Source of the DNA: Rebecca billardiae RCC1528
Taxonomy: Eukaryota; Protista; Haptophyta
Direction of reading: 5' to 3'
DNA: 64,000 bases
Assembly (NCBI GenBank): GCA_965240325.2
Contig: OZ251252.1
Span: forward strand, 496,001 to 560,000
Part shown: positions 21,208 through 64,000 of the stretch, in pieces
How positions within the stretch are numbered: position 1 is the stretch's first letter
How the letters are laid out: the number at the start of each line of letters is the position of its first letter
Notes under the pieces: generated by a model
What the model saw: the letters and a program-made list of their open reading frames with translations, nothing else
Told to the model about the DNA's origin: nothing
The model's database searches: none
Made by a program: the position numbers and the translations under genes

Positions 21208-21240
<33 letters not shown>

Positions 21241-29116: not shown

Positions 29117-32100
29117 ATGGCTCGGAGGCACACGCCGCTCCGGCTCGGTCTCGCCGTCGTGCTGGCCGTGTGCTTTGGCGCGCAGCCGGCGCGGCTTGAT
29201 GCGCCGCCGTCGCCGCCGTCGCCGCCGCCGTCGCCGCCGCCGCCGTCGCCGCCGCCGTCGCCGCCGCCGTCGCCGCCGCCGTCGCCGCCGCCGTCGCCGC
29301 CGCCGTCGCCGCCGCCCTCGCCGCCGCCCTCGCCGCCGCCCTCGCCGCCGCCCTCGCCGCCGCCCTCGCCGCCGCCCTCGCCGCCGCCGCCAAGCCCACC
29401 GCCGCCCCCGCCGCCGCCCTCGCCGCCGCCCAGCCCGCCGTCCGCGCCGCCACAGCCCCCGAACGCGCCGCCGTCAGCGCCACCGCCCTCGCCGCCATCA
29501 CCGCCCCCAAGCCCGCCGAGCCCGCCACCGAGCCCGCCGCCGCCCTCGCCGCCGCCCTCGCCGCCGCCATCTCCTCCGCCGCCGAGCCCACCGCCATCTC
29601 CGCCGCCGAGTCCCCCGCCGCCGAGCCCGCCACCGAGCCCACCACCGCCGCCGAGCCCGCCGCCCTCGCCGCCGCCGCCCCGGGAACCGCCCAGCCCGCC
29701 GCCCAGCCCGCCGCCGCCAAGTTCGCCGCCCAGCCCGCCGCCCAGCCCGCCGCCGCCGCCCAGCCCGCCGCCCAGCCCGCCGCCGCCCAGCCCGCCGCCC
29801 AGCCCGCCGCCCAGCCCGCCGCCACCGTCGCCGCCGCCGCCGCCGCCGCCCTCGCCGCCGCCGCCCTCGCCGCCGCCGGCCCCGCCGCCGCCGACCCCGC
29901 CACCCAGCCCACCGCCCTCCCCGCCGCCCTCCCCGCCGCCGCCTTCGCCGCCGCCTTCCCCGCCGCCGCCGTCGCCGCCGCCTTCCCCGCCGCCGCCGTT
30001 GCCGCCGCCCAGCCCGCCGCCGCCGTTGCCGCCGCCCAGCCCGCCGCCGCCTGCAGCTCCGCCGTCGCCTCCGCCCAGCCCGCCGCCCAGCCCGCCGCCC
30101 AGCCCGCCGCCCAGCCCGCCGCCACCGTCGCCACCGCCGTCACCGCCGTCGCCGCCGAGCCCGCCGCCGAGCCCGCCGCCCCCTCCGCCGTCGCCGCCGC
30201 CGAGCCCGCCGCCACCGATGTCGCCACCGAGCCCGCCGCCGTCGCCGCCGCCGTCGCCGCCGCCGGCACCGCCGCCCTCGCCGCCGCCGAGCCCACCGCC
30301 CAGCCCGCCGCCCGCACCGCCGCCCTCGCCGCCGCCTCCGAGCCCGCCACCGAGCCCGCCGCCGAGCCCGCCGCCGCCGAGCCCGCCGCCGAGCCCGCCG
30401 CCGAGCCCGCCGCCTCCCAGCCCGCCGCCGAGCCCGCCGCCGCCCTCGCCGCCGCCCAGCCCGCCGCCGAGCCCGCCGCCGCCGTCGCCGCCGCCGTCGC
30501 CGCCCCCGAGCCCGCCGCCGCCGGGCCCGCCCCCGAGCCCGCCGCCGCCCTCCCCCCCGCCATACCCCCCGGTGGCCCCGCCCTCGCCGCCGCCGAGCCC
30601 ACCGCCGCCGAGCCCGCCGCCGTCGCCGCCGCCGTCGCCGCCGCCGCCGAGCCCGCCGCCGTCGCCGCCGCCGTCGCCGCCGCCGAGCCCGCCGCCGAGC
30701 CCGCCGCCGAGCCCGCCGCCGAGCCCGCCGCCGTCGCCGCCGCCGTCGCCGCCGCCGTCGCCGCCGCCGTCGCCGCCGCCGCCGAGCCCGCCGCCGTCGC
30801 CGCCGCCGTCGCCGCCGCCGTCGCCGCCGCCGTCGCCGCCGCCGTCGCCGCCGCCGTCGCCGCCGCCGCCGAGCCCGCCGCCCTCGCCGCCGCCCTCGCC
30901 GCCGCCGCCGAGCCCGCCGCCGTCGCCGCCGCCGTCGCCGCCGCCGACCCCGCCGCCGCGCCCGCCGCCCAGCCCGCCGCCGAGCCCGCCGCCGAGCCCG
31001 CCGCCGATGCCGCCCCCGTCGCCGCCCCCACCGAGCCCGCCGCCGAGCCCGCCGCCGTCGCCGCCGCCGTCGCCGCCGCCGTCGCCACCGCCGTCGCCGC
31101 CGCCGTCGCCGCCGCCCAGCCCGCCTCCGAAATCGCCGCCGCCGCCGTTGCCGCCGCCGAGCCCGCCGCCGAGCCCGCCGCCCAGCCCGCCGCCCAGCCC
31201 ACCGCCGTCACCACCGCCGCCGTCGCCGCCGCCGTCGCCACCGCCCAGCCCGCCACCGAGCCCGCCGCCGAGCCCGCCGCCGAGCCCACCGCCGAGCCCA
31301 CCGCCGCCGCCGAGCCCGCCGCCGAGCCCGCCGCCGAGCCCGCCGCCGAGCCCGCCGCCGAGCCCACCGCCGAGCCCGCCGCCGAGCCCGCCGCCGTCGC
31401 CCCCGCCTTCCCCGCCGCCCAGCCCGCCGCCCAGTCCGCCGCCTTCTCCGCCGCCTTCCCCGCCGCCCTCGCCGCCGCCTTCCCCGCCGCCTTCCCCGCC
31501 GCCGTCACCGCCGCCACCGAGCCCGCCGCCGAGCCCGCCGCCGAGCCCGCCGCCGAGCCCGCCGCCGAGCCCTCCGCCACCGCCGAGCCCGCCGCCTTCC
31601 CCGCCGCCGAGCCCGCCGCCGAGCCCTCCGCCTTCCCCGCCGCCGAGCCCGCCGCCGCGCCCGCCGCCGTCGCCGCCGCCGAGCGCGCCGCCCAGCCCGC
31701 CGCCCAGCCCGCCGCCGAGCCCGCCGCCGAGCCCGCCGCCCAGCCCGCCGCCGAGCCCGCCGCCGAGCCCGCCGCCGCCGAGCCCGCCGCCGAGCCCGCC
31801 GCCGAGCCCGCCGCCGAGCCCGCCGCCGAGCCCACCACCACCGAGTCCGCCACCTACCCACCCGCCGAGCCCACCGCCGTCTCCGCCGCCCAGCCCGCCG
31901 CCTCCAAGCCCACCGCCCAGCCCGCCGCCCCCGAGCCCGCCTCCGAGCCCGCCGCCAAGCCCGCCGCCGAGCCCGCCGCCGAGCCCGCCCCCTAGCCCGC
32001 CGCCGCCGAGCCCGCCGCCGAGCCCGCCGCCGAGCCCGCCGCCGTCGCCGCCGCCTTCTCCGCCGCCGAGCCCGCCGCCGTCACCGCCGCCGCCGAGCCC

Positions 32101-32726
32101 GCCGCCGAGCCCGCCGCCGAGCCCGCCGCCGAGCCCACCGCCGCCGCCGAGCCCGCCGCCGAGCCCGCCGCCGAGCCCGCCGCCCAGCCCACCGCCGCCG
32201 AGCCCGCCGCCGAGCCCGCCGCCGAGCCCGCCGCCGAGCCCGCCGCCGAGCCCGCCGCCGAGTCCACCGCCGAGCCCACCGCCGTCACCACCGCCGAGCC
32301 CACCGCCGCCCAGCCCGCCGCCGAGCCCGCCGCCGAGCCCGCCGCCGAGCCCGCCGCCCAGCCCGCCGCCGAGCCCGCCGCCGCCGAGCCCGCCGCCGTC
32401 GCCGCCGCCGAGCCCGCCGCCGTCACCACCGCCGAGCCCGCCGCCGCCGAGCCCGCCGCCGAGTCCTCCGCCGAGCCCACCGCCTGGCCCTCCGCCCCGC
32501 CCTCCGCCGAGCCCGCCGCCCAGCCCGCCGCCGAGCCCGCCGCCAAGCCCGCCGCCGCCGCCGAGCCCGCCACCCAGCCCGCCGCCGAGCCCGCCGCCGA
32601 GCCCGCCGCCGCCGAGCTCGCCGCCGAGCCCGCCACCGTCACCGCCGCCGAGCCCACCTCCGCCGAGCCCGCCGCCGAGCCCGCCGCCGAGTCCGCCGCC
32701 CAGCCCGCCGCCCAGCCCGCCGCCCA

Positions 32727-32765
<39 letters not shown>

Positions 32766-35700
32766 CGAGCCCGCCGCCGAGCCCGCCGCCGAGCCCGCCG
32801 CCCAGCCCACCGCCGCCGAGCCCGCCGCCGAGCCCGCCGCCGAGCCCGCCGCCGAGCCCGCCGCCGAGCCCGCCGCCGAGCCCGCCGCCGAGCCCGCCGC
32901 CGTCACCACCGCCCAGCCCACCGCCGCCGAGCCCGCCGCCGAGCCCACCGCCGAGCCCGCCGCCGAGCCCACCTCCGCCGAGCCCGCCGCCGAGCCCGCC
33001 GCCGAGCCCGCCGCCCAGCCCGCCGCCCAGCCCGCCGCCCAGCCCGCCGCCGAGCCCACCGCCGCCGCCGAGCCCGCCGCCGAGCCCGCCACCGAGCCCG
33101 CCGCCGAGCCCGCCGCCCAGCCCACCGCCGCCCAGCCCGCCGCCGAGCCCGCCGCCGAGCCCGCCGCCGAGCCCGCCGCCGAGCCCGCCGCCGAGCCCGC
33201 CGCCGAGCCCGCCGCCGTCACCACCGCCCAGCCCACCGCCGCCGAGCCCGCCGCCGAGCCCGCCGCCGAGCCCGCCGCCGAGCCCGCCGCCCAGCCCACC
33301 GCCGCCGAGCCCGCCGCCGAGCCCGCCGCCGAGCCCGCCGCCGAGCCCGCCGCCGAGCCCGCCGCCGAGCCCGCCGCCGAGCCCGCCGCCGTCACCACCG
33401 CCCAGCCCACCGCCGCCGAGCCCGCCGCCGAGCCCACCGCCCAGCCCGCCGCCGAGCCCGCCGCCCAGCCCGCCGCCGAGTCCACCGCCGAGCCCGCCGC
33501 CGTCACCACCGCCCAGCCCACCGCCGCCGAGCCCGCCGCCGAGCCCGCCGCCGAGCCCGCCGCCGAGCCCACCGCCGCCGAGCCCGCCGCCCAGCCCGCC
33601 GCCGAGCCCTCCGCCCAGCCCTCCGCCGAGCCCGCCGCCGAGCCCGCCGCCGAGCCCGCCCCCATCGCCGCCGCCGTCGCCACCGCCCAGTCCGCCGCCG
33701 TCGCCACCGCCCAGCCCACCGCCCTCGCCACCGCCGAGCCCGCCGCCCTCGCCGCCTCCAAGCCCACCCCCCAGCCCACCGCCGTCACCGCCGCCGTCGC
33801 CGCCGCCGAGCCCGCCGCCATCACCGCCGCCGAGCCCGCCGCCGAGCCCGCCGCCGAGCCCGCCGCCCTCGCCACCACCGTCGCCGCCACCGAGCCCGCC
33901 GCCGTCGCCGCCGCCGTCGCCGCCGCCGTCGCCGCCACCGTCGCCGCCGCCGTCGCCGCCACCGTCGCCGCCGCCGAGCCCACCGCCGAGCCCGCCGCCG
34001 AGCCCGCCGCCGAGCCCGCCGCCGAGCCCGCCGCCTTCGCCGCCACCGTCGCCGCCTCCGAGCCCGCCACCGTCGCCGCCGCCGTCGCCCCCACCGTCGC
34101 CGCCGCCGTCGCCACCGCCATCGCCGCCGCCGTCCCCGCCGCCAAGCCCACCGCCATCGCCGCCGCCGAGCCCGCCGCCGAGCCCGCCGCCGAGCCCGCC
34201 GCCTTCGCCGCCACCGTCACCGCCACCGAGCCCGCCGCCGTCGCCGCCGCCGTCGCCGCCGCCGTCGCCGCCGCCGTCGCCGCCGCCGTCGCCACCGCCG
34301 TCGCCGCCACCGAGCCCACCGCCATCGCCGCCGCCGAGCCCGCCGCCATCCCCTCCGCCGTCGCCGCCACCCAGCCCGCCGCCCAGCCCACCGCCCAGCC
34401 CGCCGCCCAGCCCACCGCCCAGCCCGCCACCGTCGCCGCCGCCTTCGCCACCACCATCGCCGCCACCGAGCCCGCCGCCAAGCCCGCCGCCGAGCCCGCC
34501 GCCGTCGCCGCCGCCCTCACCGCCACCAAGCCCGCCGCCCTCACCACCCCCGTCGCCACCGCCCAGTCCGCCGCCCTCGCCACCACCGAGCCCGCCGCCA
34601 AGCCCGCCGCCCAGCCCACCGCCGTCACCGCCCCCGTCGCCGCCGCCGAGCCCGCCGCCGTCGCCACCGCCCTCGCCACCACCTTCGCCGCCGCCGTCGC
34701 CGCCGCCGTCGCCGCCGCCGAGCCCACCCCCATCCCCGCCGCCGTCGCCCCCGCCGAGCCCGCCACCCTCGCCGCCTCCGAGCCCGCCACCGTCGCCGCC
34801 GCCATCGCCGCCACCGAGCCCACCGCCCAGCCCACCGCCGTCACCACCGCCATCACCGCCGCCGAGCCCGCCGCCGTCGCCGCCGCCGAGCCCGCCGCCG
34901 AGCCCGCCGCCGTCGCCGCCGCCATCGCCACCACCATCGCCCCCGCCCAGCCCACCGCCGTCGCCACCGCCCAGCCCGCCACCATCGCCCCCGCCGAGCC
35001 CGCCGCCGAGCCCTCCGCCCTCGCCGCCTCCGAGCCCGCCACCGTCGCCGCCGCCGTCGCCGCCGCCGAGCCCACCGCCCTCGCCGCCGCCGAGCCCGCC
35101 GCCGTCGCCGCCGCCGAGCCCGCCGCCGTCGCCGCCGCCGAGCCCGCCGCCCTCGCCGCCGCCGAGCCCGCCGCCGAGCCCGCCGCCGAGCCCACCGCCG
35201 AGCCCGCCGCCGTCGCCGCCGCCGTCGCCGCCGCCGAGCCCGCCGCCGTCGCCGCCTCCGTCGCCGCCACCCAGCCCGCCGCCGTCGCCGCCGCCGTCGC
35301 CGCCGCCGAGCCCACCTCCCAGCCCGCCGCCGTCGCCGCCGCCGTCGCCACCGCCATCGCCGCCACCGAGCCCGCCGCCGTCGCCGCCGCCAAGCCCGCC
35401 GCCCAGCCCGCCGCCGAGCCCGCCGCCGAGCCCGCCGCCGTCGCCGCCGCCGTCGCCGCCGCCGTCGCCGCCGCCGTCGCCGCCGCCGTCGCCGCCACCC
35501 AGCCCGCCGCCGTCGCCGCCGCCGTCGCCGCCGCCGTCGCCGCCGCCCAGCCCGCCGCCGTCGCCGCCGCCGTCGCCGCCGCCGAGCCCACCTCCCAGCC
35601 CGCCGCCGTCGCCGCCGCCGTCACCACCGCCATCGCCGCCACCGAGCCCGCCGCCGTCGCCGCCGCCAAGCCCGCCGCCCAGCCCGCCGCCGAGCCCGCC

Positions 35701-38236
35701 GCCGAGCCCGCCGCCGTCGCCGCCGCCGTCGCCGCCACCGAGCCCGCCGCCGTCGCCGCCGCCGTCGCCGCCACCGAGCCCGCCGCCGTCGCCGCCGCCG
35801 TCGCCGCCGCCGTCGCCGCCGCCCAGCCCGCCGCCGTCGCCGCCGCCGTCGCCGCCGCCGAGCCCACCTCCCAGCCCGCCGCCGTCGCCGCCGCCGTCGC
35901 CGCCGCCCTCACCGCCACCGAGCCCGCCGCCGTCGCCGCCGCCGTCGCCGCCGCCCAGCCCGCCGCCGTCGCCACCGCCGTCCCCTCCGCCCAGCCCGCC
36001 GCCGTCGCCACCGCCAAGTCCGCCGCCATCGCCGCCGCCGTCGCCGCCACCGAGCCCACCTCCCAGCCCGCCGCCGCCGAGCCCGCCGCCGTCGCCGCCG
36101 CCGTCGCCGCCGCCGTCGCCACCGCCGTCGCCGCCGCCGAGCCCACCTCCATCCCCGCCGCCGTCGCCCCCGCCATCGCCGCCGCCCCGCCCGCCGCCGT
36201 CACCACCGCCGTCACCGCCTCCGCCGAGCCCGCCACCCTCGCCGCCTCCGAGCCCGCCGCCTTTGCCACCATCGCCGCCGCCGCCGAGCCCTGGCCCGAC
36301 CCACCCCTCGCCGCCGCCGGTGCCGCCGTCGCCGTCGCCGGACCTGACGGTCGAGGACTACGTCGAGCTGCGGCTCAACCTGACCGGCCTGGACGCGGAC
36401 GTTGTGACGGCGCAGCTGCTCGCCAACATTGCGGAGGAGGCGGGCGTGGACGTCTCGCGGCTCTCGATCGAGAGGATCGACCCGCTCGGCGACGGCGCGT
36501 CGCTAGTCGTCGTGAAGTCGACGACCGACCCGGCCGCTGGCGAGAGGCTCACCGACCTCTCCTCGCTGCTCCAGCCGGAGCCGCCGGCGCTCGCGCCGCT
36601 GGACGCGCTGAGCGCAGAGCTCGGGTACACGCTGGTGGACGTGAGATGGCACATGCCGCCGTCCTCGCCGCCCGCGCCGCCCGCGCCGCCCTCGCCGCCC
36701 TCGCCGCCCCCCAACCTCGACACCGAGGAGTACCTCGGCCTGCACCTGAACATGACCGCGGATCAGCTCGTGGGCTCGACCGAGTCCGCGCTGCTCGGCG
36801 CGCTCGCCTCTGAGCTGGGCGTCGACGCGTCTCGGCTCTCGTTCGAGTCGGTGGCCGACCAGGGCGACGGCACGACCCAGCTCGTCATCAAGCTGAAGAC
36901 CGAAGAGTCTTCCGGCGAGTCGAAGGTGGACCCGACATCTCAACTCACACCCAACAATGGGCCGGGCACGCCAGCGTCGCTCGCGGATCTCTCGTTGCGG
37001 CTGGGCGTGCCGGTGGCCGAGCCGCCGTACAACCACGTGCCGCCCTCGCCACCGCCCGCGCCGCCGTCGCCGCCGTCGCCGCCCTCGCCGCCGCCCGACC
37101 ACGCCAACGAGGAGTACGTTGCGCTCGAGCTGGCTCTGACGCCGGCGCAGCTCGAGGCTGCGAGTGACGCCCTACTTGGCTCGCTGGCGTCCGAGCTGGG
37201 CGTCGACGTGTCTCGGCTCTCGTTCGAGTCGGTGGCCGACCAGGGCGACGGCACGACCCAGCTCGTCATCAAGCTGAAGACCGAAGAGTCTTCCGGCGAG
37301 TCGAAGGTGGACCCGACATCTCAACTCACACCCAACAATGGGCCGGGCACGCCGACGTCGCTCGCCGATCTCTCTGAGAGGCTGGGCGTGCCGGTGGCCG
37401 AGCCGCCGTACAACCACGTGCCGCCCTCACCACCGCCCGCGCCGCCATCGCCACCGCCGCCCCCGTCGCCGCCCTCGCCGCCGCCTGACCTCGGCACCGA
37501 GGAGTATGTCGCACTCCGAGCGGCCGTTCCGTACGCCTACCTGCAGGGCCTCACGCCCGAGTCGCTGGCTTCCAGGATCAACGGCCTGCTCGGCAACCTC
37601 GCCCTCGAGCTGGGCATCGACGTGTCGAGGCTCTCGCTCGAGGCGATGCTGGACCAGGGCGACGGCACGACGAGTCTCGTGATCAAGCTCACCACGGACG
37701 AGTCGGCGGGCGAGTCGCAGGTGGACCCGGCCTCCCAGCTCACGCCGAACAGCGGGCCGGGCACGCCAGCGTCGCTCACTGACCTGTCGGAGCGCCTGGG
37801 CCTGCCGATGGCCGAGCCGCCGTACAACCACGTGCCACCCTCGCCGCCGCCCGCGCCGCCCTCGCCGCCATCACCTCCCTCTCCTCCCGCGCCGCCGCCC
37901 GACCACGTCAACGAGGAGTACCTCGCGCTCGAGCTTTCGCTCACGCCCGCGCAGCTCGAGGCCGTGCAGGAGGCGCTGCTGGGCTCGCTCGCGGCCGAGC
38001 TCGGCATCGACGCGTCTCGGCTCTCGTTTGAGGCGGTGACCGACCAGGGCGACGGCACGACCAAGCTGGTGGTCCACGTCAAGACCAACCTGGGCGAGTC
38101 GAAGCCAAATGCGACGGCCCAGCTCACGCCGAACAACGGGCCGGGCACACCATCGTCGCTTGCAGATCTCTCGGAGCGGCTGGGCGTGCCGGTGGCCGAG
38201 CCGCCGTACAACCACGTGCCGCCCTCGCCGCCGCCA

Positions 38237-38268
<32 letters not shown>

Positions 38269-39346
38269 GCCGCCAGACCACACCACCGAGGAGTTCCTCG
38301 CTCTCGAGCTGGCTCTGACGCCGGGTCAGCTCGAGGCCGCGCGCGAAGCGCTGCTGCGCGCTCTCGCGTCCGAATTGGGTGTCGGCGAGTCTCGGCTCTC
38401 GTTCGAGTCGGTGACCGACCAGGGCGACGGCACGACCAGGCTCGTCGTGAAGCTGGCGACCGACCCGTTTGCTGGCGAGTTGCAGGTCGACCCAAGTGGC
38501 CAGCTCACGCCGAACAACGGGCCAGGTACGCCGGCGTCGCTTGCGGATCTCTCGTCCAAGCTGGGCGTGCCGGTAGCGGAGTACCCGTACAACCACGTGC
38601 CGCCCTCGGCGCCGCCGTCCCCTTCGCCGCCGCCCAACCTCGAGCTGTATGGCTACGCTGCGCTGAGGGTCAACTCGACCGAATTTGCGTTGGACGAGTT
38701 CTCGATCGACTTCTTGGCGAGGGTGGCCGAGGCGCTCGGCGTGGACGTGGAGCGGCTGTCGGTGCACGCGACGAACGTGCTGAGCGACACGACCACGCGC
38801 GTCGTCGTCCGCATCCGCAACGATCCGTCGGTCGGCGACGCGCCGGTCGATGTCGTGCAGTCGCTGTCGCAGGAGGCTCCCCCGGTGGTTCCGCCGTTGG
38901 AGCAGCTCACCGACAAGCTCGGCGTGCCCGTGCTGGAGGTGCCGAAGGCCTTTGAGCCGCCTTCGCCGCCGCCCTCGCCACCGTCGCCGCCTCCGGACCT
39001 GACCGTGGAGGACTACGTCGAGCTGCGGCTCAACCTCACCACGTGGGAGGCGGCCGCGGCGGCGGATGAGCTGCTGGCCGCGCTGGCGGAGGTGGCGGGC
39101 GTGGACCCGTCGCGCCTGTCGATCGAGCGGATCGAGCCGGTGGGCGACGACGACTCGTTGGTCGTGATCAAGTCGACGACCAACCCGGCCGCGGGCGAAA
39201 CGCAAACCGACCTCTCATCCTTGCTGCAGCAAGTCACGGAGCAGCCGCCGGCGCCGGCGCCTTTGGACGCGCTGAGCTCGGATCTGGGGTTCGCGCTGGT
39301 GAGCGTGCACAGGCATGTCCCACCGTCTTCCCCACCGTCGCCACCG

Positions 39347-39382
<36 letters not shown>

Positions 39383-43943: not shown

Positions 43944-43987
<44 letters not shown>

Positions 43988-48537: not shown

Positions 48538-48571
<34 letters not shown>

Positions 48572-50811: not shown

Positions 50812-50845
<34 letters not shown>

Positions 50846-51578: not shown

Positions 51579-51643
<65 letters not shown>

Positions 51644-53097
51644 GCGCCGCCGCCTGACCACGCCAACGAGGAGTACCTCGCGCTTGAGATCTCGCTCACG
51701 CCCGCGCAGCTCGAGGCCGCGCGGGAGGCGCTGGTGGCCTCGCTTGCGGCCGAGCTGGGCGTCGACGCGTCTCGGCTCTCGTTCGAGGCGGTGGCCGACC
51801 AGGGCGACGGCACGGCCAAGCTCGTGGTGAAGCTGACGACCGACCCGTCCGCGGGCGAGTCGTTGGTGGACCCCACAAGCAGGCTCACGCCGAACAACGG
51901 GCCGGGTACGCCGTCGTCGCTGGCGGATCTGTCCTCGAGGCTTGGCGTGCCGGTGGCCGAGCCGCCGTACAACCACGTGCCGCCCTCGCCGCCGCCCTCG
52001 CCGCCTTCCCCTGCGCCGCCGCCCGACCACGCCAGTGAGGAGTACCTCGCGCTGGAGCTCGCGCTCACGCCGGCGCAGCTCGAGGCTCAGCAGCAGGACC
52101 TGCTGGCGGCGCTTGCCTCCGAGCTGGGCGTCGACGTGTCTCGGCTCTCGTTCGAGGCGGTGGCCGACCAGGGCGACGGCACAACCAAGCTCGTGTTGAA
52201 GCTGACGACCGACCCGTCCGCGGGCGAGTCGTTGGTGGACCCCACAAGCAGGCTCACGCCAAACAACGGGCCGGGTACGCCGACGTCGCTCGCCGATCTT
52301 TCTGAGAGGCTGGGTGTGCCGGTGGCCGAGCCACCGTACAACCACGTGCCGCCCTCGCCGCCGCCCTCGCCGCCGCTGCCGCCCTCGCCGCCGCCCAACC
52401 TCGAGCTGTACGACTACGCGAGAGTGCGGGTCAACTCGACCGAGTTTGCGTTCGAGGAGTTTTCGATCGACTTCTTGGCCAAGGTGGCCGAGGCGCTCGG
52501 CGTGGACGTGGAGCGACTGTCGGTGCACGCGACGAACGTGCTCAGCGACACGACGACGCGCGTGGTGATCCGCATCCGCAACGATCCGTCGGTCGGCGAC
52601 GCGCCTGTGAACATCGTGGAGAAGCTCTCGCAGGTTCCTGCGCCGCTCTCGCCCGTGCAGAAGCTGAGTGACGTGTTGGGCGTGCCCGTGCTCGACGTGC
52701 CGGACGCGTTCGAGCCGCCCTCGCCTCCGCCCGCAGCGCCGTCGCCGCCGCCCGACTTCCGCGTGGAGGACTACGTCGAGGTCCGACTCGACCTCACCCC
52801 GGCAGAGGCGGCCGCGGCGGCGGACGAGCTGCTGGCCGCGCTGGCGGAGGCGGCGGGCGTGGACCCGTCGCGCCTCTCGATCGAGCGGATCGAGCCGGTG
52901 GGCGAGGACGACTCCTTGGTCGTCATCAAATCGACTGTAAACCCGGCCGCAGGCGGCGAGACGCTGACCGACCTCTCATCCTTGCTGCAGCAGCTGTCCG
53001 AGCAGCCGCCGCAGGCGCCTCTGGACGCGCTGAGCTCGGAGCTGCCGTACACGCTGATCGACGTGCAGTGGCACATGCCGCCGTCCTCGCCGCCAGT

Positions 53098-53131
<34 letters not shown>

Positions 53132-53864
53132 CCCAACCTCGACACCGAGGAGTACCTCGGCCTGCACATCGACCTGACGGCCGGCGAGCTTGCGAGTGCG
53201 TCCAACGCGACGACACTGCTCGCGTCCGTCGCTGCCGAGCTCGGCATCGCGGCATCGCGGCTGTCGTTCGAGGCGGTGACGGAGCAGGGCGACGGCACGA
53301 CCAAGGTGGTGCTCAAGCTCACCACGGATGAGTCGGCGGGCGAGTCGCAGGTGGACCCGACATCTCAACTCACACCGAACAACGGGCCGGGCACGCCTGC
53401 GTCTCTGGACGAGCTCTCGTCGAGGCTAGGCGTGCCGATGGTCGCCGCGCCGTTTAGCCACGTGCCGCCCTCGCCGCCGCCTGCGCCGCCCTCGCCGCCC
53501 TCGCCGCCGGCACCGCCGCCCGACCTCGCCAACGAGGAGTACGTTGCGCTCGAGTTGGCGCTGACGCCGACGCAGCTCGAAGCTGCGCACGCGGCACTGC
53601 TCGTTTCGCTCGCCGCCGAGCTGGGCGTCGACGTGTCTCGGCTCTTATTTGAGGCTGTGACCGACCAGGGCGACGGCACGACCAAGCTCGTGATTAAGCT
53701 GACGACGAACACGTTCGCCGGCGAGTCGAAGGTCGACCCGACGGGCCAACTCAAGCCGAACAACGGGCCGGGTACGCCGTCGTCGCTCGCCGATCTCTCG
53801 TCGAGGCTGGGCGTGCCGGTGACGGAGTACCCGTACAACCACGTGCCGCCCTCGCCGCCACCCG

Positions 53865-53899
<35 letters not shown>

Positions 53900-55377
53900 C
53901 CCTCGCCGCCCTCGCCGCCCGCGCCGCCCGCGCCGCCGCCTGACCACGCCAACGAGGAGTACCTCGCGCTCGAGATCTCGCTCACGCCCGCGCAGCTCGA
54001 GGCCGCGCGGGAGGCGCTGCTCGGCGCGCTCTCGACCGAGCTGGGCGTCGACGCGTCTCGGCTCTCGTTCGAGGCGGTGGCCGACCAGGGCGACGGCACA
54101 ACCAAGCTCGTGTTGAAGCTGATGACCGACCCGTCCGCGGGCGAGTCGTTGGTGGACCCCACAAGCAGGCTCACGCCAAACAACGGGCCGGGTACGCCAA
54201 CGTCGCTCGCCGATCTCTCTGAGAGGCTGGGCGTGCCGGTGGCCGAGCCGCCGTACAACCACGTGCCACCCTCGCCGCCGCCCTCGCCGCCTTCCCCTGC
54301 GCCGCCGCCCGACCACGCCAGTGAGGAGTACCTCGCGCTGGAGCTCGCGCTCACGCCGGCGCAGCTCGAGGCTCAGCAGCAGGACCTGCTGGCGGCGCTT
54401 GCCTCCGAGCTCGGCATCGACGTGTCTCGGCTCTCGTTCGAGGCGGTGGCCGACCAGGGCGACAGCACAACCAAGCTCGTGTTGAAGCTGACGACCGACC
54501 CGTCCGCGGGCGAGTCGTTGGTAGACCCCACAAGCAGGCTCACGCCAAACAACGGGCCGGGTACGCCGACGTCGCTCGCCGATCTCTCTGAGAGGCTGGG
54601 TGTGCCGGTGGCCGAGCCGCCGTACAACCACGTGCCGCCCTCGCCGCCGCCCTCGCCGCCGCTGCCGCCCTCGCCGCCGCCCAACCTCGAGCTGTACGAC
54701 TACGCGCGAGTGCGGGTCAACTCGACCGAGTTTGCGTTCGAGGAGTTCTCGATCGACTTCTTGGCCAAGGTGGCCGAGGCGCTCGGCGTGGACGTGGAGC
54801 GACTGTCGGTGCACGCGACGAACGTGCTGAGCGACACGACGACGCGCGTGGTGATCCGCATCCGCAACGATCCGTCGGTCGGCGACGCGCCTGTGAACAT
54901 CGTGGAGAAGCTTTCGCAGGTTCCTGCGCCGCTCTCGCCCGTGCAGAAGCTGAGTGACATGCTGGGCGTGCCCGTCCTCGACGTGCCGGACGCGTTCGAG
55001 CCGCCCTCGCCTCCGCCAGCGCCGTCGCCGCCGCCTGACTTCCGCGTGGAGGACTACGTCGAGGTCCGACTCGACCTCACCCCGGCAGAGGCGGCCGCGG
55101 CGGCGGACGAGCTGCTGGCCGCGCTGGCGGAGGCGGCGGGCGTGGACCCGTCGCGCCTCTCGATCGAGCGGATCGAGCCGGTGGGCGAGGACGACGCCCT
55201 GGTCGTCATCAAGTCGACTGTAAACCCGGCCGCAGGCGAGACGCTGACCGACCTCTCGTCCGTGCTGCAGCAGCTGTCCGAGCAGCCGCCGCAGGCGCCG
55301 CTGGACGCGCTGAGCTCGGAGCTGCCGTACACGCTGATCGACGTGCAGTGGCACATGCCGCCGTCCTCGCCGCCAGT

Positions 55378-55411
<34 letters not shown>

Positions 55412-56144
55412 CCCAACCTCGACACCGAACAATACCTCGGCCTTCACATCGACCTGACGGCCGGCGAGCTTGCGAGCGCGTCCAACGCGACGACACTGCT
55501 CGCGTCCGTCGCTGCCGAGCTCGGCATCGCGGCATCGCGGCTGTCGTTCGAGGCGGTGACGGAGCAGGGCGACGGCACGACCAAGGTGGTGCTCAAGCTC
55601 ACCACGGACGAGTCGGCGGGCGAGTCGCAGGTGGACCCGACATCTCAACTCACACCGAACAACGGGCCGGGCACGCCTGCGTCTCTGGACGAGCTCTCGT
55701 CGAGGCTAGGCATGCCGATGGTCGCCGCGCCGTTTAGCCACGTGCCGCCCTCGCCGCCGCCTGCGCCGCCCTCGCCGCCCTCGCCGCCGGCACCGCCGCC
55801 CGACCTCGCCAACGAGGAGTACGTTGCGCTCGAGTTGGCGCTGACGCCGACGCAGCTCGAAGCTGCGCGCGCGGCACTGCTCGTTTCGCTCGCCACCGAG
55901 CTGGGCGTCGACGTGTCTCGGCTCTCGTTCGAGGCTGTGACCGCCCAGGGCGACGGCATGACCAAGGTGGTGGTCAAAGTCAAGACCGACCCGTCGGCCG
56001 GCGAGTCGAAGGTCGACCCGACATCTCAACTCACACCGAACAATGGGCCGGGCACACCATCGTCGCTTGCGGATCTCTCGTCGAGGCTGGGCGTGCCGGT
56101 TGCCGAGCCGCCGTACAACCACGTGCCGCCCTCGCCGCCACCCG

Positions 56145-56209
<65 letters not shown>

Positions 56210-57663
56210 GCGCCGCCGCCTGACCACGCCAACGAGGAGTACCTCGCGCTTGAGATCTCGCTCACGCCCGCGCAGCTCGAGGCCGCGCGGGAGGCGCTGG
56301 TGGCCTCGCTTGCGGCCGAGCTGGGCGTCGACGCGTCTCGGCTCTCGTTCGAGGCGGTGGCCGACCAGGGCGACGGCACGGCCAAGCTCGTGGTGAAGCT
56401 GGCGACCGACCCGTCCGCGGGCGAGTCGTTGGTGGACCCCACAAGCAGGCTCACGCCGAACAACGGGCCGGGTACGCCAACGTCGCTGGCTGATCTGTCC
56501 TCGAGGCTTGGCGTGCCGGTGGCCGAGCCGCCGTACAACCACGTGCCGCCCTCGCCGCCGCCCTCGCCGCCTTCCCCTGCGCCGCCGCCCGACCACGCCA
56601 GTGAGGAGTACCTCGCGCTGGAGCTCGCGCTCACGCCGGCGCAGCTCGAGGCTCAGCAGCAGGACCTGCTGGCGGCGCTTGCCTCCGAGCTGGGCGTCGA
56701 CGTGTCTGGGCTCTCGTTCGAGGCGGTGGCCGACCAGGGCGACGGCACAACCAAGCTCGTGTTGAAGCTGACGACCGACCCGTCCGCGGGCGAGTCGTTG
56801 GTGGACCCCACAAGCAGGCTCACGCCAAACAACGGGCCGGGTACGCCAACGTCGCTCGCCGATCTCTCTGAGAGGCTGGGCGTGCCGGTGGCTGAGCCGC
56901 CGTACAACCACGTGCCACCCTCGCCGCCGCCCTCGCCGCCGCTGCCGCCCTCGCCGCCGCCCAACCTCGAGCTGTACGACTACGCGAGAGTGCGGGTCAA
57001 CTCGACCGAGTTTGCGTTCGAGGAGTTCTCGATCGACTTCTTGGCCAAGGTGGCCGAGGCGCTCGGCGTGGACGTGGAGCGACTGTCGGTGCACGCGACG
57101 AACGTGCTGAGCGACACGACGACGCGCGTGGTGATCCGCATCCGCAACGATCCGTCGGTCGGGGACGCGCCTGTGAACATCGTGGAGAAGCTCTCGCAGG
57201 TTCCTGCGCCGCTCTCGCCCGTGCAGAAGCTGAGTGACGTGTTGGGCGTGCCCGTGCTCGACGTGCCGGACGCGTTCGAGCCGCCCTCGCCTCCGCCCGC
57301 AGCGCCGTCGCCGCCGCCCGACTTCCGCGTGGAGGACTACGTCGAGGTCCGACTCGACCTCACCCCGGCAGAGGCGGCCGCGGCGGCGGATGAGCTGCTG
57401 GCCGCGCTGGCGGAGGCGGCGGGCGTGGACCCGTCGCGCCTCTCGATCGAGCGGATCGAGCCGGTGGGCGAGGACGACTCCTTGGTCGTCATCAAATCGA
57501 CGGCCAACCCGGCCGCAGGCGGCGAGACGCTGACCGACCTCTCATCCTTGCTGCAGCAGCTGTCCGAGCAGCCGCCGCAGGCGCCTCTGGACGCGCTGAG
57601 CTCGGAGCTGCCGTACACGCTGATCGACGTGCAGTGGCACATGCCGCCGTCCTCGCCGCCAGT

Positions 57664-57697
<34 letters not shown>

Positions 57698-58430
57698 CCC
57701 AACCTCGACACCGAGGAGTACCTCGGCCTGCACATCGACCTGACGGCCGGCGAGCTTGCGAGTGCGTCCAACGCGACGACACTGCTCGCGTCCGTCGCTG
57801 CCGAGCTCGGCATCGCGGCATCGCGGCTGTCGTTCGAGGCGGTGACGGAGCAGGGCGACGGCACGACCAAGGTGGTGCTCAAGCTCACCACGGACGAGTC
57901 GGCGGGCGAGTCGCAGGTGGACCCGACATCTCAACTCACACCGAACAACGGGCCGGGCACGCCTGCGTCTCTGGACGAGCTCTCGTCGAGGCTAGGCGTG
58001 CCGATGGTCGCCGCGCCGTTTAGCCACGTGCCGCCCTCGCCGCCGCCTGCGCCGCCCTCGCCGCCCTCGCCGCCGGCACTGCCGCCCGACCTCGCCAACG
58101 AGGAGTACGTTGCGCTCGAGTTGGCGCTGACGCCGACGCAGCTCGAAGCTGCGCACGCGGCACTGCTCGTTTCGCTCGCCACCGAGCTGGGCGTCGACGT
58201 GTCTCGGCTCTTATTTGAGGCTGTGACCGACCAGGGCGACGGCACGACCAAGCTGGTGGTGAAGCTGACGACGAACACGTTCGCCGGCGAGTCGAAGGTC
58301 GACCCGACGGGCCAACTCAAGCCGAACAACGGGCCGGGTACGCCGTCGTCGCTCGCCGATCTCTCGTCGAGGCTGGGCGTGCCGGTGACGGAGTACCCGT
58401 ACAACCACGTGCCGCCCTCGCCGCCACCCG

Positions 58431-58465
<35 letters not shown>

Positions 58466-59943
58466 CCCTCGCCGCCCGCGCCGCCCGCGCCGCCCGCGCC
58501 GCCGCCTGACCACGCCAACGAGGAGTACCTCGCGCTTGAGATCTCGCTCACGCCCGCGCAGCTCGAGGCCGCGCGGGAGGCGCTGGTGGCCTCGCTTGCG
58601 GCCGAGCTGGGCGTCGACGCGTCTCGGCTCTCGTTCGAGGCGGTGGCCGACCAGGGCGACGGCACAACCAAGCTCGTGGTGAAGCTGACGACCGACCCGT
58701 CCGCGGGCGAGTCGTTGGTGGACCCCACAAGCAGGCTCACGCCAAACAACGGGCCGGGTACGCCAACGTCGCTCGCCGATCTCTCTGAGAGGCTGGGCGT
58801 GCCGGTGGCCGAGCCGCCGTACAACCACGTGCCACCCTCGCCGCCGCCCTCGCCGCCTTCCCCTGCGCCGCCGCCCGACCACGCCAGTGAGGAGTACCTC
58901 GCGCTGGAGCTCGCGCTCACGCCGGCGCAGCTCGAGGCTCAGCAGCAGGACCTGCTGGCGGCGCTTGCCTCCGAGCTCGGCATCGATGTGTCTCGGCTCT
59001 CGTTCGAGGCGGTGGCCGACCAGGGCGACGGCACAACCAAGCTCGTGTTGAAGCTGACGACCGACCCGTCCGCGGGCGAGTCGTTGGTGGACCCCACAAG
59101 CAGGCTCACGCCAAACAACGGGCCGGGTACGCCGACGTCGCTCGCCGATCTCTCTGAGAGGCTGGGTGTGCCGGTGGCCGAGCCGCCGTACAACCACGTG
59201 CCACCCTCGCCGCCGCCCTCGCCGCCGCTGCCGCCCTCGCCGCCGCCCAACCTCGAGCTGTACGACTACGCGCGAGTGCGGGTCAACTCGACCGAGTTTG
59301 CGTTCGAGGAGTTCTCGATCGACTTCTTGGCCAAGGTGGCCGAGGCGCTCGGCGTGGACGTGGAGCGACTGTCGGTGCACGCGACGAACGTGCTGAGCGA
59401 CACGACGACGCGCGTGGTGATCCGCATCCGCAACGATCCGTCGGTCGGCGACGCGCCTGTGAACATCGTGGAGAAGCTTTCGCAGGTTCCTGCGCCGCTC
59501 TCGCCCGTGCAGAAGCTGAGTGACATGCTGGGCGTGCCCGTCCTCGACGTGCCGGACGCGTTCGAGCCGCCCTCGCCTCCGCCAGCGCCGTCGCCGCCGC
59601 CTGACTTCCGCGTGGAGGACTACGTCGAGGTCCGACTCGACCTCACCCCGGCAGAGGCGGCCGCGGCGGCGGACGAGCTGCTGGCCGCGCTGGCGGAGGC
59701 GGCGGGCGTGGACCCGTCGCGCCTCTCGATCGAGCGGATCGAGCCGGTGGGCGAGGACGACGCCCTGGTCGTCATCAAGTCGACTGTAAACCCGGCCGCA
59801 GGCGAGACGCTGACCGACCTCTCGTCCGTGCTGCAGCAGCTGTCCGAGCAGCCGCCGCAGGCGCCGCTGGACGCGCTGAGCTCGGAGCTGCCGTACACGC
59901 TGATCGACGTGCAGTGGCACATGCCGCCGTCCTCGCCGCCAGT

Positions 59944-59977
<34 letters not shown>

Positions 59978-60710
59978 CCCAACCTCGACACCGAACAGTA
60001 CCTCGGCCTTCACATCGACCTGACGGCCGGCGAGCTTGCGAGCGCGTCCAACGCGACGACACTGCTCGCGTCCGTCGCTGCCGAGCTCGGCATCGCGGCA
60101 TCGCGGCTGTCGTTCGAGGCGGTGGCGGAGCAGGGCGACGGCACGACCAAGGTGGTGCTCAAGCTCACCACGGACGAGTCGGCGGGCGAGTCGCAGGTGG
60201 ACCCGACATCTCAACTCACACCGAACAACGGGCCGGGCACGCCTGCGTCTCTGGACGAGCTCTCGTCGAGGCTAGGCGTGCCGATGGTCGCCGCGCCGTT
60301 TAGCCACGTGCCGCCCTCGCCGCCGCCTGCGCCGCCCTCGCCGCCCTCGCCGCCGGCACCGCCGCCCGACCTCGCCAACGAGGAGTACGTTGCGCTCGAG
60401 TTGGCGCTGACGCCGACGCAGCTCGAAGCTGCGCGCGCGGCACTGCTCGTTTCGCTCGCCACCGAGCTGGGCGTCCACGTGTCTCGGCTCTCGTTCGAGG
60501 CTGTGACCGCCCAGGGCGACGGCATGACCAAGGTGGTGGTCAAAGTCAAGACCGACCCGTCGGCCGGCGAGTCGAAGGTCGACCCGACATCTCAACTCAC
60601 ACCGAACAATGGGCCGGGCACACCATCGTCGCTTGCGGATCTCTCGTCGAGGCTGGGCGTGCCGGTTGCCGAGCCGCCGTACAACCACGTGCCGCCCTCG
60701 CCGCCACCCG

Positions 60711-60775
<65 letters not shown>

Positions 60776-62238
60776 GCGCCGCCGCCTGACCACGCCAACG
60801 AGGAGTACCTCGCGCTTGAGATCTCGCTCACGCCCGCGCAGCTCGAGGCCGCGCGGGAGGCGCTGGTGGCCTCGCTTGCGGCCGAGCTGGGCGTCGACGC
60901 GTCTCGGCTCTCGTTCGAGGCGGTGGCCGACCAGGGCGACGGCACGGCCAAGCTCGTGGTGAAGCTGACGACCGACCCGTCCGCGGGCGAGTCGTTGGTG
61001 GACCCCACAAGCAGGCTCACGCCGAACAACGGGCCGGGTACGCCGTCGTCGCTGGCTGATCTGTCCTCGAGGCTTGGCGTGCCGGTGGCCGAGCCGCCGT
61101 ACAACCACGTGCCGCCCTCGCCGCCGCCCTCGCCGCCTTCCCCTGCGCCGCCGCCCGACCACGCCAGTGAGGAGTACCTCGCGCTGGAGCTCGCGCTCAC
61201 GCCGGCGCAGCTCGAGGCTCAGCAGCAGGACCTGCTGGCGGCGCTTGCCTCCGAGCTGGGCGTCGACGTGTCTCGGCTCTCGTTCGAGGCGGTGGCCGAC
61301 CAGGGCGACGGCACAACCAAGCTCGTGTTGAAGCTGACGACCGACCCGTCCGCGGGCGAGTCGTTGGTGGACCCCACAAGCAGGCTCACGCCAAACAACG
61401 GGCCGGGTACGCCGACGTCGCTCGCCGATCTCTCTGAGAGGCTGGGCGTGCCGGTGGCCGAGCCGCCGTACAACCACGTGCCACCCTCGCCGCCGCCCTC
61501 GCCGCCGCTGCCGCCCTCGCCGCCGCCCAACCTCGAGCTGTACGACTACGCGCGAGTGCGGGTCAACTCGACCGAGTTTGCGTTCGAGGAGTTCTCGATC
61601 GACTTCTTGGCCAAGGTGGCCGAGGCGCTCGGCGTGGACGTGGAGCGACTGTCGGTGCACGCGACGAACGTGCTGAGCGACACGACGACGCGCGTGGTGA
61701 TCCGCATCCGCAACGATCCGTCGGTCGGCGACGCGCCTGTGAACATCGTGGAGAAGCTCTCGCAGGTTCCTGCGCCGCTCTCGCCCGTGCAGAAGCTGAG
61801 TGACGTGTTGGGCGTGCCCGTTCTCGACGTGCCGGACGCGTTCGAGCCGCCCTCGTCGCCGCCGTCGCCGCCGCCGCCGCCGTCGCCGCCGTCGCCGCCG
61901 CCGGACTTCAGCACCGAGGACTACGTCGACCTGCTGCTCGACCTGACAGGGCTCGACGTGGATGAGGCGATGGCCGATCTCCTCGAGGCGATCGCAGAAG
62001 ACGCCGGAGTTGACGTCTCGCGGCTGTCGATCGAAAAGATCGAGCCGCAGGACGATGGCTCCACGCTCGTGGTCGTGAAATCCACGGCCAACCCTGCCGC
62101 CGGCGAGACGCTCACCGACCTGCGATCGGTGCTCCAGCCCAAGCCGCCTGTGTTGGCGCCTCTGGACGCGCTGAGCTCGGAGCTGCCGTACACGCTGATC
62201 GACGTGCAGTGGCACATGCCACCGTCCTCGCCGCCAGT

Positions 62239-62272
<34 letters not shown>

Positions 62273-63005
62273 CCCAACCTCGACACCGAGGAGTACCTCG
62301 GCCTGCACATCGACCTGACGGCCGGCGAGCTTGCGAGCGCGTCCAACGCGACGACACTGCTCGCGTCCGTCGCTGCCGAGCTCGGCATCGCCGCATCGCG
62401 GCTGTCGTTCGAGGCGGTGACGGAGCAGGGCGACGGCACGACCAAGGTGGTGCTCAAGCTCACCACGGATGAGTCGGCGGGCGAGTCGCAGGTGGACCCG
62501 ACATCTCAACTCACACCGAACAACGGGCCGGGCACGCCTGCGTCTCTGGACGAGCTCTCGTCGAGGCTGGGCGTGCCGATGGTCGCCGCGCCGTTTAGCC
62601 ACGTGCCGCCCTCGCCGCCGCCTGCGCCGCCCTCGCCGCCCTCGCCGCCGGCACCGCCGCCCGACCTCGCCAACGAGGAGTACGTTGCGCTCGAGTTGGC
62701 GCTGACGCCGACACAGCTCGAAGCTGCGCGCGAGGCACTGCTCGTTTCGCTCGCCGCCGAGCTGGGTGTCGACGTGTCTCGGCTCTCGTTCGAGGCTGTG
62801 GCCGACCAGGGCGACGGCACGACCAAGCTGGTGGTGAAGCTGACGACGAACACGTTCGCCGGCGAGTCGAAGGTCGACCCGACGGGCCAGCTCAAGCCGA
62901 ACAACGGGCCGGGCACGCCGTCATCGCTCGCCGATCTCTCGTCGAGGCTGGGCGTGCCGGTGGCGGAGTACCCGTACAACCACGTGCCGCCCTCGCCGCC
63001 ACCCG

Positions 63006-63070
<65 letters not shown>

Positions 63071-64000
63071 GCGCCGCCGCCTGACCACGCCAACGAGGAG
63101 TACCTCGCGCTCGAGATCTCGCTCACGCCCGCGCAGCTCGAGGCCGCGCGGGAGGCGCTGGTGGCCTCGCTTGCGGCCGAGCTGGGCGTCGACGCGTCTC
63201 GGCTCTCGTTCGAGGCGGTGGCCGACCAGGGCGACGGCACGGCCAAGCTCGTGGTGAAGCTGACGACCGACCCGTCCGCGGGCGAGTCGTTGGTGGACCC
63301 CACAAGCAGGCTCACGCCGAACAACGGGCCGGGTACGCCGACGTCGCTGGCTGATCTGTCCTCGAGGCTTGGCGTGCCGGTGGCCGAGCCGCCGTACAAC
63401 CACGTGCCGCCGTCGCCGCCACCAGCACCGCCTTCCCCTGCGCCGCCGCCCGACCACGCCAGTGAGGAGTACCTCGCGCTGGAGCTCGTGCTCACGCCGG
63501 CGCAACTCGAGGCTCAGCAGCAGGACCTGCTGGCGGCGCTTGCCTCCGAACTGGGCATAGCCGCAGCTCGGCTCTCGTTTGAGGCGGTGACCGACCAGGG
63601 CGATGGCACCACCAAGCTGGTGGTGAAGATCACCATCGACCCGTCGGGCGAGTCGAAGGTGGACCCGACATCTCAACTCACACCGAACAATGGGCCGGGC
63701 ACGCCGACGTCGCTCGCCGATCTCTCTGAGAGGCTGGGCGTGCCGGTGGCTGAGCCGCCGTACAACCACTTGCCGCCCTCGCCGCCGCCCTCGCCGCCGC
63801 TGCCGCCCTCGCCGCCGCCCAACCTCGAGCTGTACGACTACGCGCGAGTGCGGGTCAACTCGACCGAGTTCGCGTTCGAGGAGTTCTCGATCGACTTCTT
63901 GGCGAAGGTGGCTGAGGCGCTCGGCGTGGACGTGGAGCGGCTGTCGGTGCACGCGACGAACGTGCTGAGCGACACGACGACGCGCGTGGTGATCCGCATC
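29117..64000 (+). CDS. Giant secreted/surface protein (at least 11,628 aa, 3' partial): signal peptide, Ser-Pro extensin-like stalk, at least 73 tandem SEA-like domains
   Basis: ATG 29117 gives MARRHTPLRLGLAVVLAVCFGAQPARLDAPPSPP. The same frame is in register at 36341, at all 12 type-A domain starts and at 63998. The ORF track has no + ORF ending in this frame after 29117, consistent with no stop. Alternative in-frame ATG at 29021. Confidence 0.9.
29203..36340 (+). repeat. Coding low-complexity array, (Ser-Pro3-4)n, about 7.1 kb
   Basis: Degenerate 12-15-nt units such as TCGCCGCCGCCG and AGCCCGCCGCCG. Confidence 0.95.
36341..64000 (+). repeat. Coding tandem domain array: ~380-bp modules, ~2.28-2.3-kb hexamer, ~4.57-4.6-kb dodecamer
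   Basis: Type-A domain starts at 36341, 38996, 41294, 43601, 45893, 48194, 50471, 52754, 55037, 57320, 59603, 61904; spacing is exactly 2283 bp from 50471 to 59603. Confidence 0.95.

Follow-up and report, generated by a model that had tools for sequence, protein, structure and literature searches.

A window of 64,000 nucleotides from the haptophyte alga Rebecca billardiae RCC1528 (contig OZ251252.1 of assembly GCA_965240325.2, positions 496,001 to 560,000 of the forward strand) contains a reading frame that begins at position 29117 and is still open where the window ends, at position 64000 (coordinates are those of the window throughout, and all parts of this frame lie on the plus strand). 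The question raised by this locus is whether so long a frame is a gene at all and, if it is, what kind of protein it specifies. An original prediction, made by reading the letters alone, had proposed an algal mucin-like surface protein composed of a signal peptide, a long Ser/Pro stalk and an array of acidic domains. After following up this proposal by computational approaches, we give a probability of about 65% to the reading that the locus is the gene for a fibrous protein that is secreted and whose polypeptide, glycans not counted, amounts to at least 1.18 MDa, with a passive structural role as a filament of the cell surface or matrix; an enzymatic or a specific receptor role is not expected.

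An open frame of at least 11,628 codons

Exact translation of the frame from 29117 gave 11,628 codons and 0 stops, in full agreement with the stop-free length of about 34.9 kb (at least 11,628 residues, open at the edge) that had been predicted; the closest in-frame stop upstream lies at 28997, and the part seen corresponds to a bare polypeptide of 1,180 kDa. The window is very GC-rich (60-77% outside the giant gene, at most 89% in its Pro-rich segment and about 71% in its domain array), so that long open reading frames (ORFs) are common here. The frame could thus be regarded as a silent or decaying satellite-like ORF, open by chance or by its high GC content and without a functional protein: high GC reduces the frequency of stops, and the Pro-rich segment (29000-36400) is overlaid by shadow ORFs reaching 2,453 residues on the minus strand and 2,439 residues in another plus frame. 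Such a reading is, however, extremely improbable in view of the sequence that follows this segment. Over positions 36317-64000 (9,228 codons), about 151 stops are predicted from base composition and none is present (log10 P of none = -65.6), whereas the remaining five frames contain 37 to 213 stops each. Further, GC at codon positions 1, 2 and 3 of the array is 0.72, 0.53 and 0.90, a pattern that singles out the frame originally proposed. The ratio of nonsynonymous to synonymous divergence (dN/dS, Nei-Gojobori method) was about 0.3 in a comparison of 469 pairs of domains of equal length, and 0.14 when the youngest copies were compared (synonymous divergence, dS, of about 0.04); these pairs are non-independent, and dN/dS was below 1 in each identity class all the same. 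The confident predicted fold of the domains, the retention of the architecture in another organism and the presence of the domain in the transcriptome of a relative, all described below, also speak against a silent frame. Taken together, the evidence that the giant frame is a genuine protein-coding gene is strong, and the description of its product as a secreted-looking giant repetitive protein is supported; the original interpretation as a whole is supported in part.

The shadow ORFs were rejected as genes, being out-of-frame products of the CCG-rich repeat, and in the array the codon-position GC marks out the frame that runs from 29117. That the ORF track misses the giant gene, as had been pointed out, is explained by the omission from the ORF listing of all ORFs that run past the window edge. 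No frameshift was encountered in the 34.9 kb of sequence, at 70-89% GC, and every segment of the array can be assigned to a linker or to a domain that aligns over its full length; with the array fully accounted for in this way, there is no space for an intron in the part seen, which bears out the earlier impression that none was evident.

With regard to the N-terminus, residues 1-29 (29117..29203, plus strand) do look like the signal peptide that had been claimed, comprising a basic n-region, a 15-residue hydrophobic core and small residues ahead of the Pro-rich segment, and they hold the sole Cys of the protein (residue 19). This is a heuristic call made by eye, and the in-frame ATGs at 29021, 29027 and 29036, between the stop at 28997 and the assumed start, delimit a possible N-terminal extension (29021..29116, plus strand); a start at 29021 would place 32 residues, mostly basic or Ala/Gly, before the hydrophobic core. 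Translation may thus begin at one of these upstream ATGs or at 29117, and the segment could be a cleaved signal peptide or a signal anchor. Apart from the core just described there is no hydrophobic segment, and no transmembrane (TM) helix was found in the 11,628 residues, in which no 19-residue window exceeds 1.6 on the Kyte-Doolittle scale.

The Ser-Pro3 rod and the domain array

Directly behind the signal-peptide-like segment lies a (Ser-Pro3)n rod of about 2,380 residues (29204..36340, plus strand; residues 30-2408), recognized by its composition and repeat counts. Pro and Ser make up 75% and 23% of it, respectively, and just 36 residues are neither. Among its approximately 590 tetrapeptides there are 535 SPPP units; SPPPP occurs 68 times, Pro runs of length 3 and 4 number 482 and 58, and a single Tyr is present. 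The underlying DNA is far less regular, since the 12-nucleotide repeat matches at 76% only, with 77 distinct 12-mers, a longest perfect run of 7 units, and Ser encoded by AGC (312) as well as TCG (181), which belong to two unrelated Ser codon families. A segment that is near-invariant as an SPPP peptide and varied as DNA is better explained by selection acting on the peptide than by slippage of a microsatellite. The length and composition that had been assigned to this segment were therefore correct, whereas its designation as a stalk is not supported: the rod is N-terminal, without any head domain in front of it, and if the protein were anchored at its C-terminus, the rod would form the free distal end of the molecule, not its base.

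The array begins at nt 36341, and splitting at the Pro/Ser/Ala linkers (7-32 residues, PPSPP-type) delimited 72 complete domains of 104-116 residues (about 108) plus one partial domain at the window edge, in accordance with the at least 73 acidic domains joined by PPSPP linkers of the original prediction. Four types of domain, A to D, were distinguished, with a as a variant of A that carries an insertion of 8 residues. Proteins of one type are about 80% identical; A, a and D share 62-68% identity with one another, whereas comparisons between B, C and the A/a/D group give 28-37%. The domains are arranged in 12 super-repeats of six domains each. The first six (CDAaAA, BCDAAA, BCAAaA, BCDAAA, BCAAaA and BCDAAA; 36 domains) constitute an older, diverged half (36341..50113, plus strand), defined through domain splitting, identity and dN/dS, and the following six, all BCDAAA, constitute together with the partial B domain a young half homogenised in sequence (50114..64000, plus strand), defined through repeat identity. 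Within the young half, stretches 4,566 bp apart are 96-99.6% identical as DNA; at a lag of 12 domains most domains display 94-100% protein identity, which is lower where the last C domain differs. Near-identical repeats at lags of 6 and 12 domains show that the array expanded through tandem duplication of blocks of these sizes. The insertion of variant a, VPYAYLQG, is located between strand 1 and helix 1; its three copies (37487-37834, 42446-42793 and 47039-47386), which share about 95% mutual identity, have a constant position in the alternate super-repeat BCAAaA.

The array carries a net charge of -792 (about -11 per domain) with an isoelectric point of 4.2, and it holds 0 Cys residues, as had been stated. 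The N-x-S/T sequons that were said to recur are also there, 26 in number (NST 11, NAT 9, NLT 3, NMT 3); they recur because the domains are copies, and enrichment was rejected, as about 36 would be expected from composition by our estimate. Each linker is preceded by a single conserved aromatic residue (in YNHV, FSHV, WHM or AFE), and no YXY motif was found in the array.

Repeats of this kind invite doubt about the assembly, and a real gene may have been inflated in size if the six near-identical BCDAAA super-repeats (50.1-64 kb) and/or the rod had been over-expanded or mis-joined. The high identity of the 4,566-bp units is compatible with such an error, and so are the low proportion of unique 31-mers in the young half (16%) and the small share of independent data, a single sequencing run of unstated kind that holds 6% of the sampled words. 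On the other hand, all 301-mers of the rod and all 1001-mers of the array are unique, so that each copy can be positioned by long reads; differences between copies are scattered and mainly synonymous (the dS of about 0.04 and dN/dS of 0.14 given above), and the 36 domains of the older half have diverged so far that they leave no ambiguity. The lack of frameshifts over 34.9 kb argues for high base accuracy and, in combination with the k-mer uniqueness, renders an assembly expansion of rod or array unlikely.

Fold and relatives of the repeated domain

Two domains were modelled with AlphaFold2: a type-A representative (37097..37420, plus strand), for which an alignment of 42 domain copies served as input, and a representative of type B, the most divergent type (50114..50431, plus strand), which bears an NST sequon and whose input additionally held environmental relatives. 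The models reached a predicted local distance difference test score (pLDDT) of 92.4 and a predicted template modelling score (pTM) of 0.83 for type A, and of 88.2 and 0.80 for type B. Type A is predicted to adopt a beta-alpha-beta-beta-alpha-beta arrangement; in the type-B model the elements follow the same order through the second long helix, and the last strand is partly formed. Folds were ranked by a structural search independent of Foldseek, run on both models, in which the top match of both types was the ferredoxin-like domain of Nup54 (Z 10.2 and 10.9). Next came the membrane-adjacent domains (MADs) of CELSR1, protocadherin-15 and cadherin-23 (Z 8.6-9.8), and the Nup54 and MAD alignments comprised 94-98 residues at 2.9-3.5 Angstrom with a sequence identity of 7-15%. 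The MUC16 SEA structures 1ivz and 7sa9 gave Z 7.4 and 7.2 with type A, and 7.3 and 5.4 with type B; dystroglycan, IA-2 and Notch HD were among the further top-15 matches, and TROP2 also matched. Foldseek searches of the AlphaFold database returned matches that include protist proteins labelled 'SEA domain-containing', and matches in the ESM Atlas included KIAA0319, ALE2_N and haptophyte clusters, the few labelled members of which are Haptophyta.

Sequence-based searches, in which Pfam was run on the domain and also on its relatives, assigned the domain to no family. Pfam-A hmmscan with five single domains and one six-domain unit gave no SEA (PF01390) match at E<=10, and the weak hits to HTH_3, DUF167, SPOR and RHH_3 were rejected because they were below their cut-offs or covered short stretches only. 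Likewise, nothing significant was obtained in sequence searches of the PDB, the matches being collagen-like low-complexity ones and, as the sole match of the 42-domain profile, Nup54 at E 0.16. The conserved positions of the domain lie mainly in the hydrophobic core and in turns, which fits a structural module, and the sole invariant polar residue is the Arg of 'SR[LV]S'. An assignment to the SEA/MAD-type ferredoxin-like fold class is well supported by the two models; membership in the SEA family through a sequence profile is not shown, and the likeness to SEA may reflect either the convergence that had been proposed or distant homology. Of the resemblance to MUC16 and its SEA modules that had been put forward, the layout is thus a fair comparison and a SEA-like fold is predicted for both modelled types, although a Pfam SEA match is missing.

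The fold also bears on an alternative in which the SEA-like domains would act as cleavage or mechanosensing modules: a strained beta2-beta3 hairpin ('G-D-G / T-T-K-L-V-V' in types A/D) would undergo self-cleavage through an N-to-O acyl shift, with the array parting under force. The modelled hairpin is found at the site of the G/SVVV motif, which many but not all SEA domains possess, and presents a Gly, then a hydroxyl residue and then a beta-branched or aliphatic run, and the structural matches to SEA, dystroglycan, IA-2 and Notch HD are compatible with such a function. The motif is nevertheless G-T-T-[KQ]-[LV]-V in types A/D, not G-S-[VI]-V-V, and it reads 'S-D-T-T-T' in type B and 'E-D-D-[SA]-L' in type C, both without Gly; beta hairpins in general often have a Gly-rich turn, and MUC16's own SEA domains are mostly non-cleaving. 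We consider this alternative quite improbable.

Searching 1.84 billion representative proteins with a profile of the domain identified 16 relatives at E<=1e-3, one of them below 1e-30. These were weak overall; those examined were of protist type or environmental and included no animal mucin, the two with a species label were algal, and the giant protein itself was in neither of the protein libraries searched. The best relative (P0001) is encoded on a 3.2-kb environmental contig (L001, 1-3183; JGI sample 3300038657; 63% GC) that shows (PPPS)n followed by at least 8 tandem domains of the giant-gene family, which are not separated by Pro linkers and form a super-repeat of their own, of four domains (lag 1,275 bp). 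Both ends of the contig are open, and the reading frame seems to shift once, near nt 1240. As it combines (PPPS)n with a domain array, the rod-then-array layout is conserved in a second organism. Another relative, an 85-residue fragment from the Pavlova gyrans transcriptome (P0005), consists of the domain and then a Pro linker. Distant relatives (P0003, P0010, P0011 and P0014, the last from Rhodomonas salina) are protist surface proteins with many Cys-rich Ephrin_rec_like repeats; in P0003, a mucin-like segment rich in Thr precedes four related domains in tandem, after which come a TM helix and a tail.

Four other proteins retrieved (P0002, P0004, P0006 and P0007) represent a separate family with units of about 75-85 residues ('DCWLS..EIASDPEAAAFAA.FIA.TAA.LGVDPS...GISTDGD..PGC'), which have only a helix-'LGVDPS'-strand motif in common with the giant-gene domain; the JGI label poly(3-hydroxybutyrate) depolymerase that some of its members bear looks like a mis-annotation. 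A degenerate DNA pattern run against metagenome contigs gave a single match, an unrelated bacterial contig with a response regulator (L006).

A predicted polyanionic filament

In the molecule that we propose, the Ser-Pro3 segment would be hydroxylated and O-glycosylated, by analogy with known fibrils, to become a glycan-sheathed polyproline-II rod of about 0.73 micrometres (at 1.24 nm per tetrapeptide). The linkers would be short rods of like kind, summing to about 0.37 micrometres, and the domains would be beads of about 3.5-4 nm, adding about 0.26-0.29 micrometres, so that the part seen would amount to a polyanionic filament of more than 1.3 micrometres. Such a filament may serve as a fibre of the cell-surface coat, as a flagellar or body hair, or as an adhesive or mucilage tether, and would space, shield and hydrate the surface; the domain array would be an extender and perhaps a force absorber.

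Several known systems offer partial precedents. The extensins and the hydroxyproline-rich glycoproteins (HRGPs) of green algae, such as Chlamydomonas MST1/MST3, the sexual agglutinins and cell-wall glycoproteins, also have Ser-Pro3-4 motifs and a signal peptide, join a polyproline-II rod to globular domains and are filamentous extracellular products, as the giant protein is predicted to be. In the Chlamydomonas mastigoneme, which contains SPPP motifs, every Pro of the polyproline-II helix is glycosylated hydroxyproline, the interspersed Ser is galactosylated, and glycans encase the helix (PMC11015965). The rod described here is 30 times longer than the 78-residue Pro region of MST1, and it differs from extensins in lacking Tyr cross-link motifs (YXY, VYK), having a single Tyr; moreover, the globular portion of the protein is built from at least 73 copies of an unrelated domain that has no name, and the host lies outside the green lineage. 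The plant and green-algal hydroxyproline code invoked by the original prediction accordingly agrees with the SPPP motifs behind a signal-peptide-like N-terminus, but its use for a haptophyte is an extrapolation.

A second precedent is provided by the TLP-4 fibrils, made of a linear tetrapeptide repeat with a rise of 12.4 Angstrom per unit and a glycan shell more than 3-4 nm thick, for which a pattern of more than 50 consecutive [ST]Pxx or P[ST]xx tetrapeptides has been used; giant tetrapeptide-repeat proteins occur in diatoms and dinoflagellates, a Nitzschia protein of 6,077 residues with 667 PSxx repeats being one example (PMC11725842). The rod agrees with this pattern, since SPPP fits 'SPxx', and its approximately 590 units would extend for a predicted 0.7-0.8 micrometres. 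TLP-4, the sequence of which is not known, differs in its 3,4-dihydroxyproline with two glycans, its glycosylated Ser/Thr and its two non-Pro positions (e.g., PTAA), whereas the rod has Pro at 3 of 4 positions and is followed by an array of folded domains, none of which is described for TLP-4 (PMC11725842).

The third comparison is with MUC16 (CA125) and the SEA membrane mucins, which are likewise giant: behind a long N-terminal part with expected O-glycosylation come dozens of modules of about 110-156 residues that have the SEA-type ferredoxin-like fold and are set apart by glycosylatable linkers. The repeats of MUC16 bear a conserved Cys pair; the giant-gene domain is Cys-free, strongly acidic and without a Pfam SEA match. 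In place of a Ser/Thr/Pro-rich mucin domain, the algal protein has a near-perfect Ser-Pro3 repeat, the region in which a C-terminal TM segment and tail would be sought lies outside the part seen, the host is an alga, and common ancestry is unproven. As for SEA domains in general, the signal-peptide-like N-terminus and the Ser/Pro linkers would fit an extracellular site beside glycosylated sequence. The closer structural matches are less similar in setting, since a protein has one MAD, beside the membrane, in contrast to an array of 73, and Nup54 is intracellular. Finally, the extenders of giant bacterial RTX adhesins comprise tens to more than 100 near-identical acidic domains of about 100 residues that arose by recent tandem duplication and project the protein far from the cell; they differ in being Ca2+-rigidified immunoglobulin-like beta-sandwiches, in their bacterial origin and other secretion route, and in the absence of Pro-rich linkers.

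Where the molecule resides is the point at which a possible, though not favoured, alternative arises: the gene may be real and its product a free secreted polyanion of matrix or mucilage, or an acidic cation- or mineral-binding matrix protein that gels the matrix via Ca2+/Mg2+. No TM-like segment occurs in the 11,628 residues, the strongly negative charge of the domains (about -11 each, -792 for the array) would suit such a polymer, the N-terminal rod has no head domain, and pavlovophyte algae have palmelloid, mucilage-embedded stages. Conversely, no Ca-binding motif was identified, the C-terminus falls past the window and may bring an anchor, and the distant relatives of the domain adjoin a TM helix.

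Other observations weigh against the filament that we favour, and they account for the caution of our estimate. The search for sequencing runs listed none of RNA, the signal peptide rests on inspection by eye and has in-frame ATGs upstream, and the C-terminus, and with it the type of anchor (TM, glycosylphosphatidylinositol or none) and the orientation, lies beyond the window edge. Hydroxylation and glycosylation are extrapolated to a haptophyte from the green lineage and a pond fibril, and our literature search found no paper on haptophyte HRGPs. Fold matches of Z 7-11 are in a range that possibly reflects a common arrangement of elements, Z 7-8 being typical even for unrelated folds, and the best match, Nup54, is an intracellular protein. 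For the number of young repeats and the length of the rod we rely on the assembly, with 6% of sampled words covered by an independent run. A more specific proposal, built on analogy and in our opinion doubtful, is that the protein would be the core of a haptophyte glycofibril similar to mastigonemes or TLP-4, and hence the first hydroxyproline-type surface filament with a defined sequence from outside the green lineage. Composed of the 0.7-micrometre rod and of an array of a lineage-restricted, unnamed SEA/MAD-like domain, the Gly-Thr hairpin of which would self-cleave or unfold under load, it would be a force-sensitive tether of micrometre length, used in flagellar hairs, in a surface coat or as an adhesive.

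The genomic surroundings of the giant gene are of interest for its transcription and its origin. Upstream of it, an AT-rich island (28700..28990, plus strand) includes two exact copies of TAAAAATTAC, at 28834 and 28923. Allowing up to one mismatch, motifs of the TAAAAATTAC type have 3 matches versus 0.01 expected, and the third (1746-1755, one mismatch) is situated 93 bp upstream of the ATG of a WD40 gene; TAAAAATTAC may belong to the core promoters of this very GC-rich genome, and the island is a candidate promoter region. Contrary to the claim that most neighbouring genes have introns, one ORF was seen for each of the WD40 gene (1839-5915; 1,358 residues), a DEAD-box helicase (6412-7980, minus strand), an MMR_HSR1 GTPase (8194-9861) and a USP5/13-like deubiquitinase (19310-22537). 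A Logan contig of the same organism (L005, run ERR14847151) carries exactly the GTPase of the window and a WD40 ORF of equal length, together with a helicase call of the same length and position, which confirms the upstream genes as single ORFs; it was the sole match in the search with the GTPase. The USP5-like protein had its best match (63%) in an MMETSP transcript of 68% GC, followed by about 45-48% to green algae and stramenopiles alike, and the sole named relative of the helicase was from Prymnesium parvum (37%). A genome GC of 73% has been reported for Diacronema lutheri (PMC8379373), to which that of the Rebecca billardiae window is similar. The helicase relative and this GC, along with the Pavlova gyrans fragment and the labelled ESM Atlas clusters, point to a haptophyte more than to a green alga.

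ORF lists and gene finders miss genes such as this one, and repeat-rich loci of 70-89% GC call for long-read validation; the giant PKS genes of Prymnesium are another instance of overlooked giant algal genes (bioRxiv 10.1101/2024.01.29.577497). If expressed, the protein would be among the largest single-exon proteins known in any alga, with more of it beyond the window, and it would provide a defined sequence for a class of surface filaments so far known by microscopy or as anonymous fibrils in electron cryo-microscopy. Further context for giant algal genes is given by Chlamydomonas FMG1B, termed "a mucin orthologue" (bioRxiv 10.1101/2024.09.28.615573). The expressed giant protein would represent the mucin design, a glycosylated rod joined to a SEA-like array, outside animals and built from an unnamed domain family for which hardly any relatives exist among 1.84 billion representative proteins, and the presence in a haptophyte of an extensin-like Ser-Pro3 chemistry would, if true, extend this chemistry beyond the green lineage.

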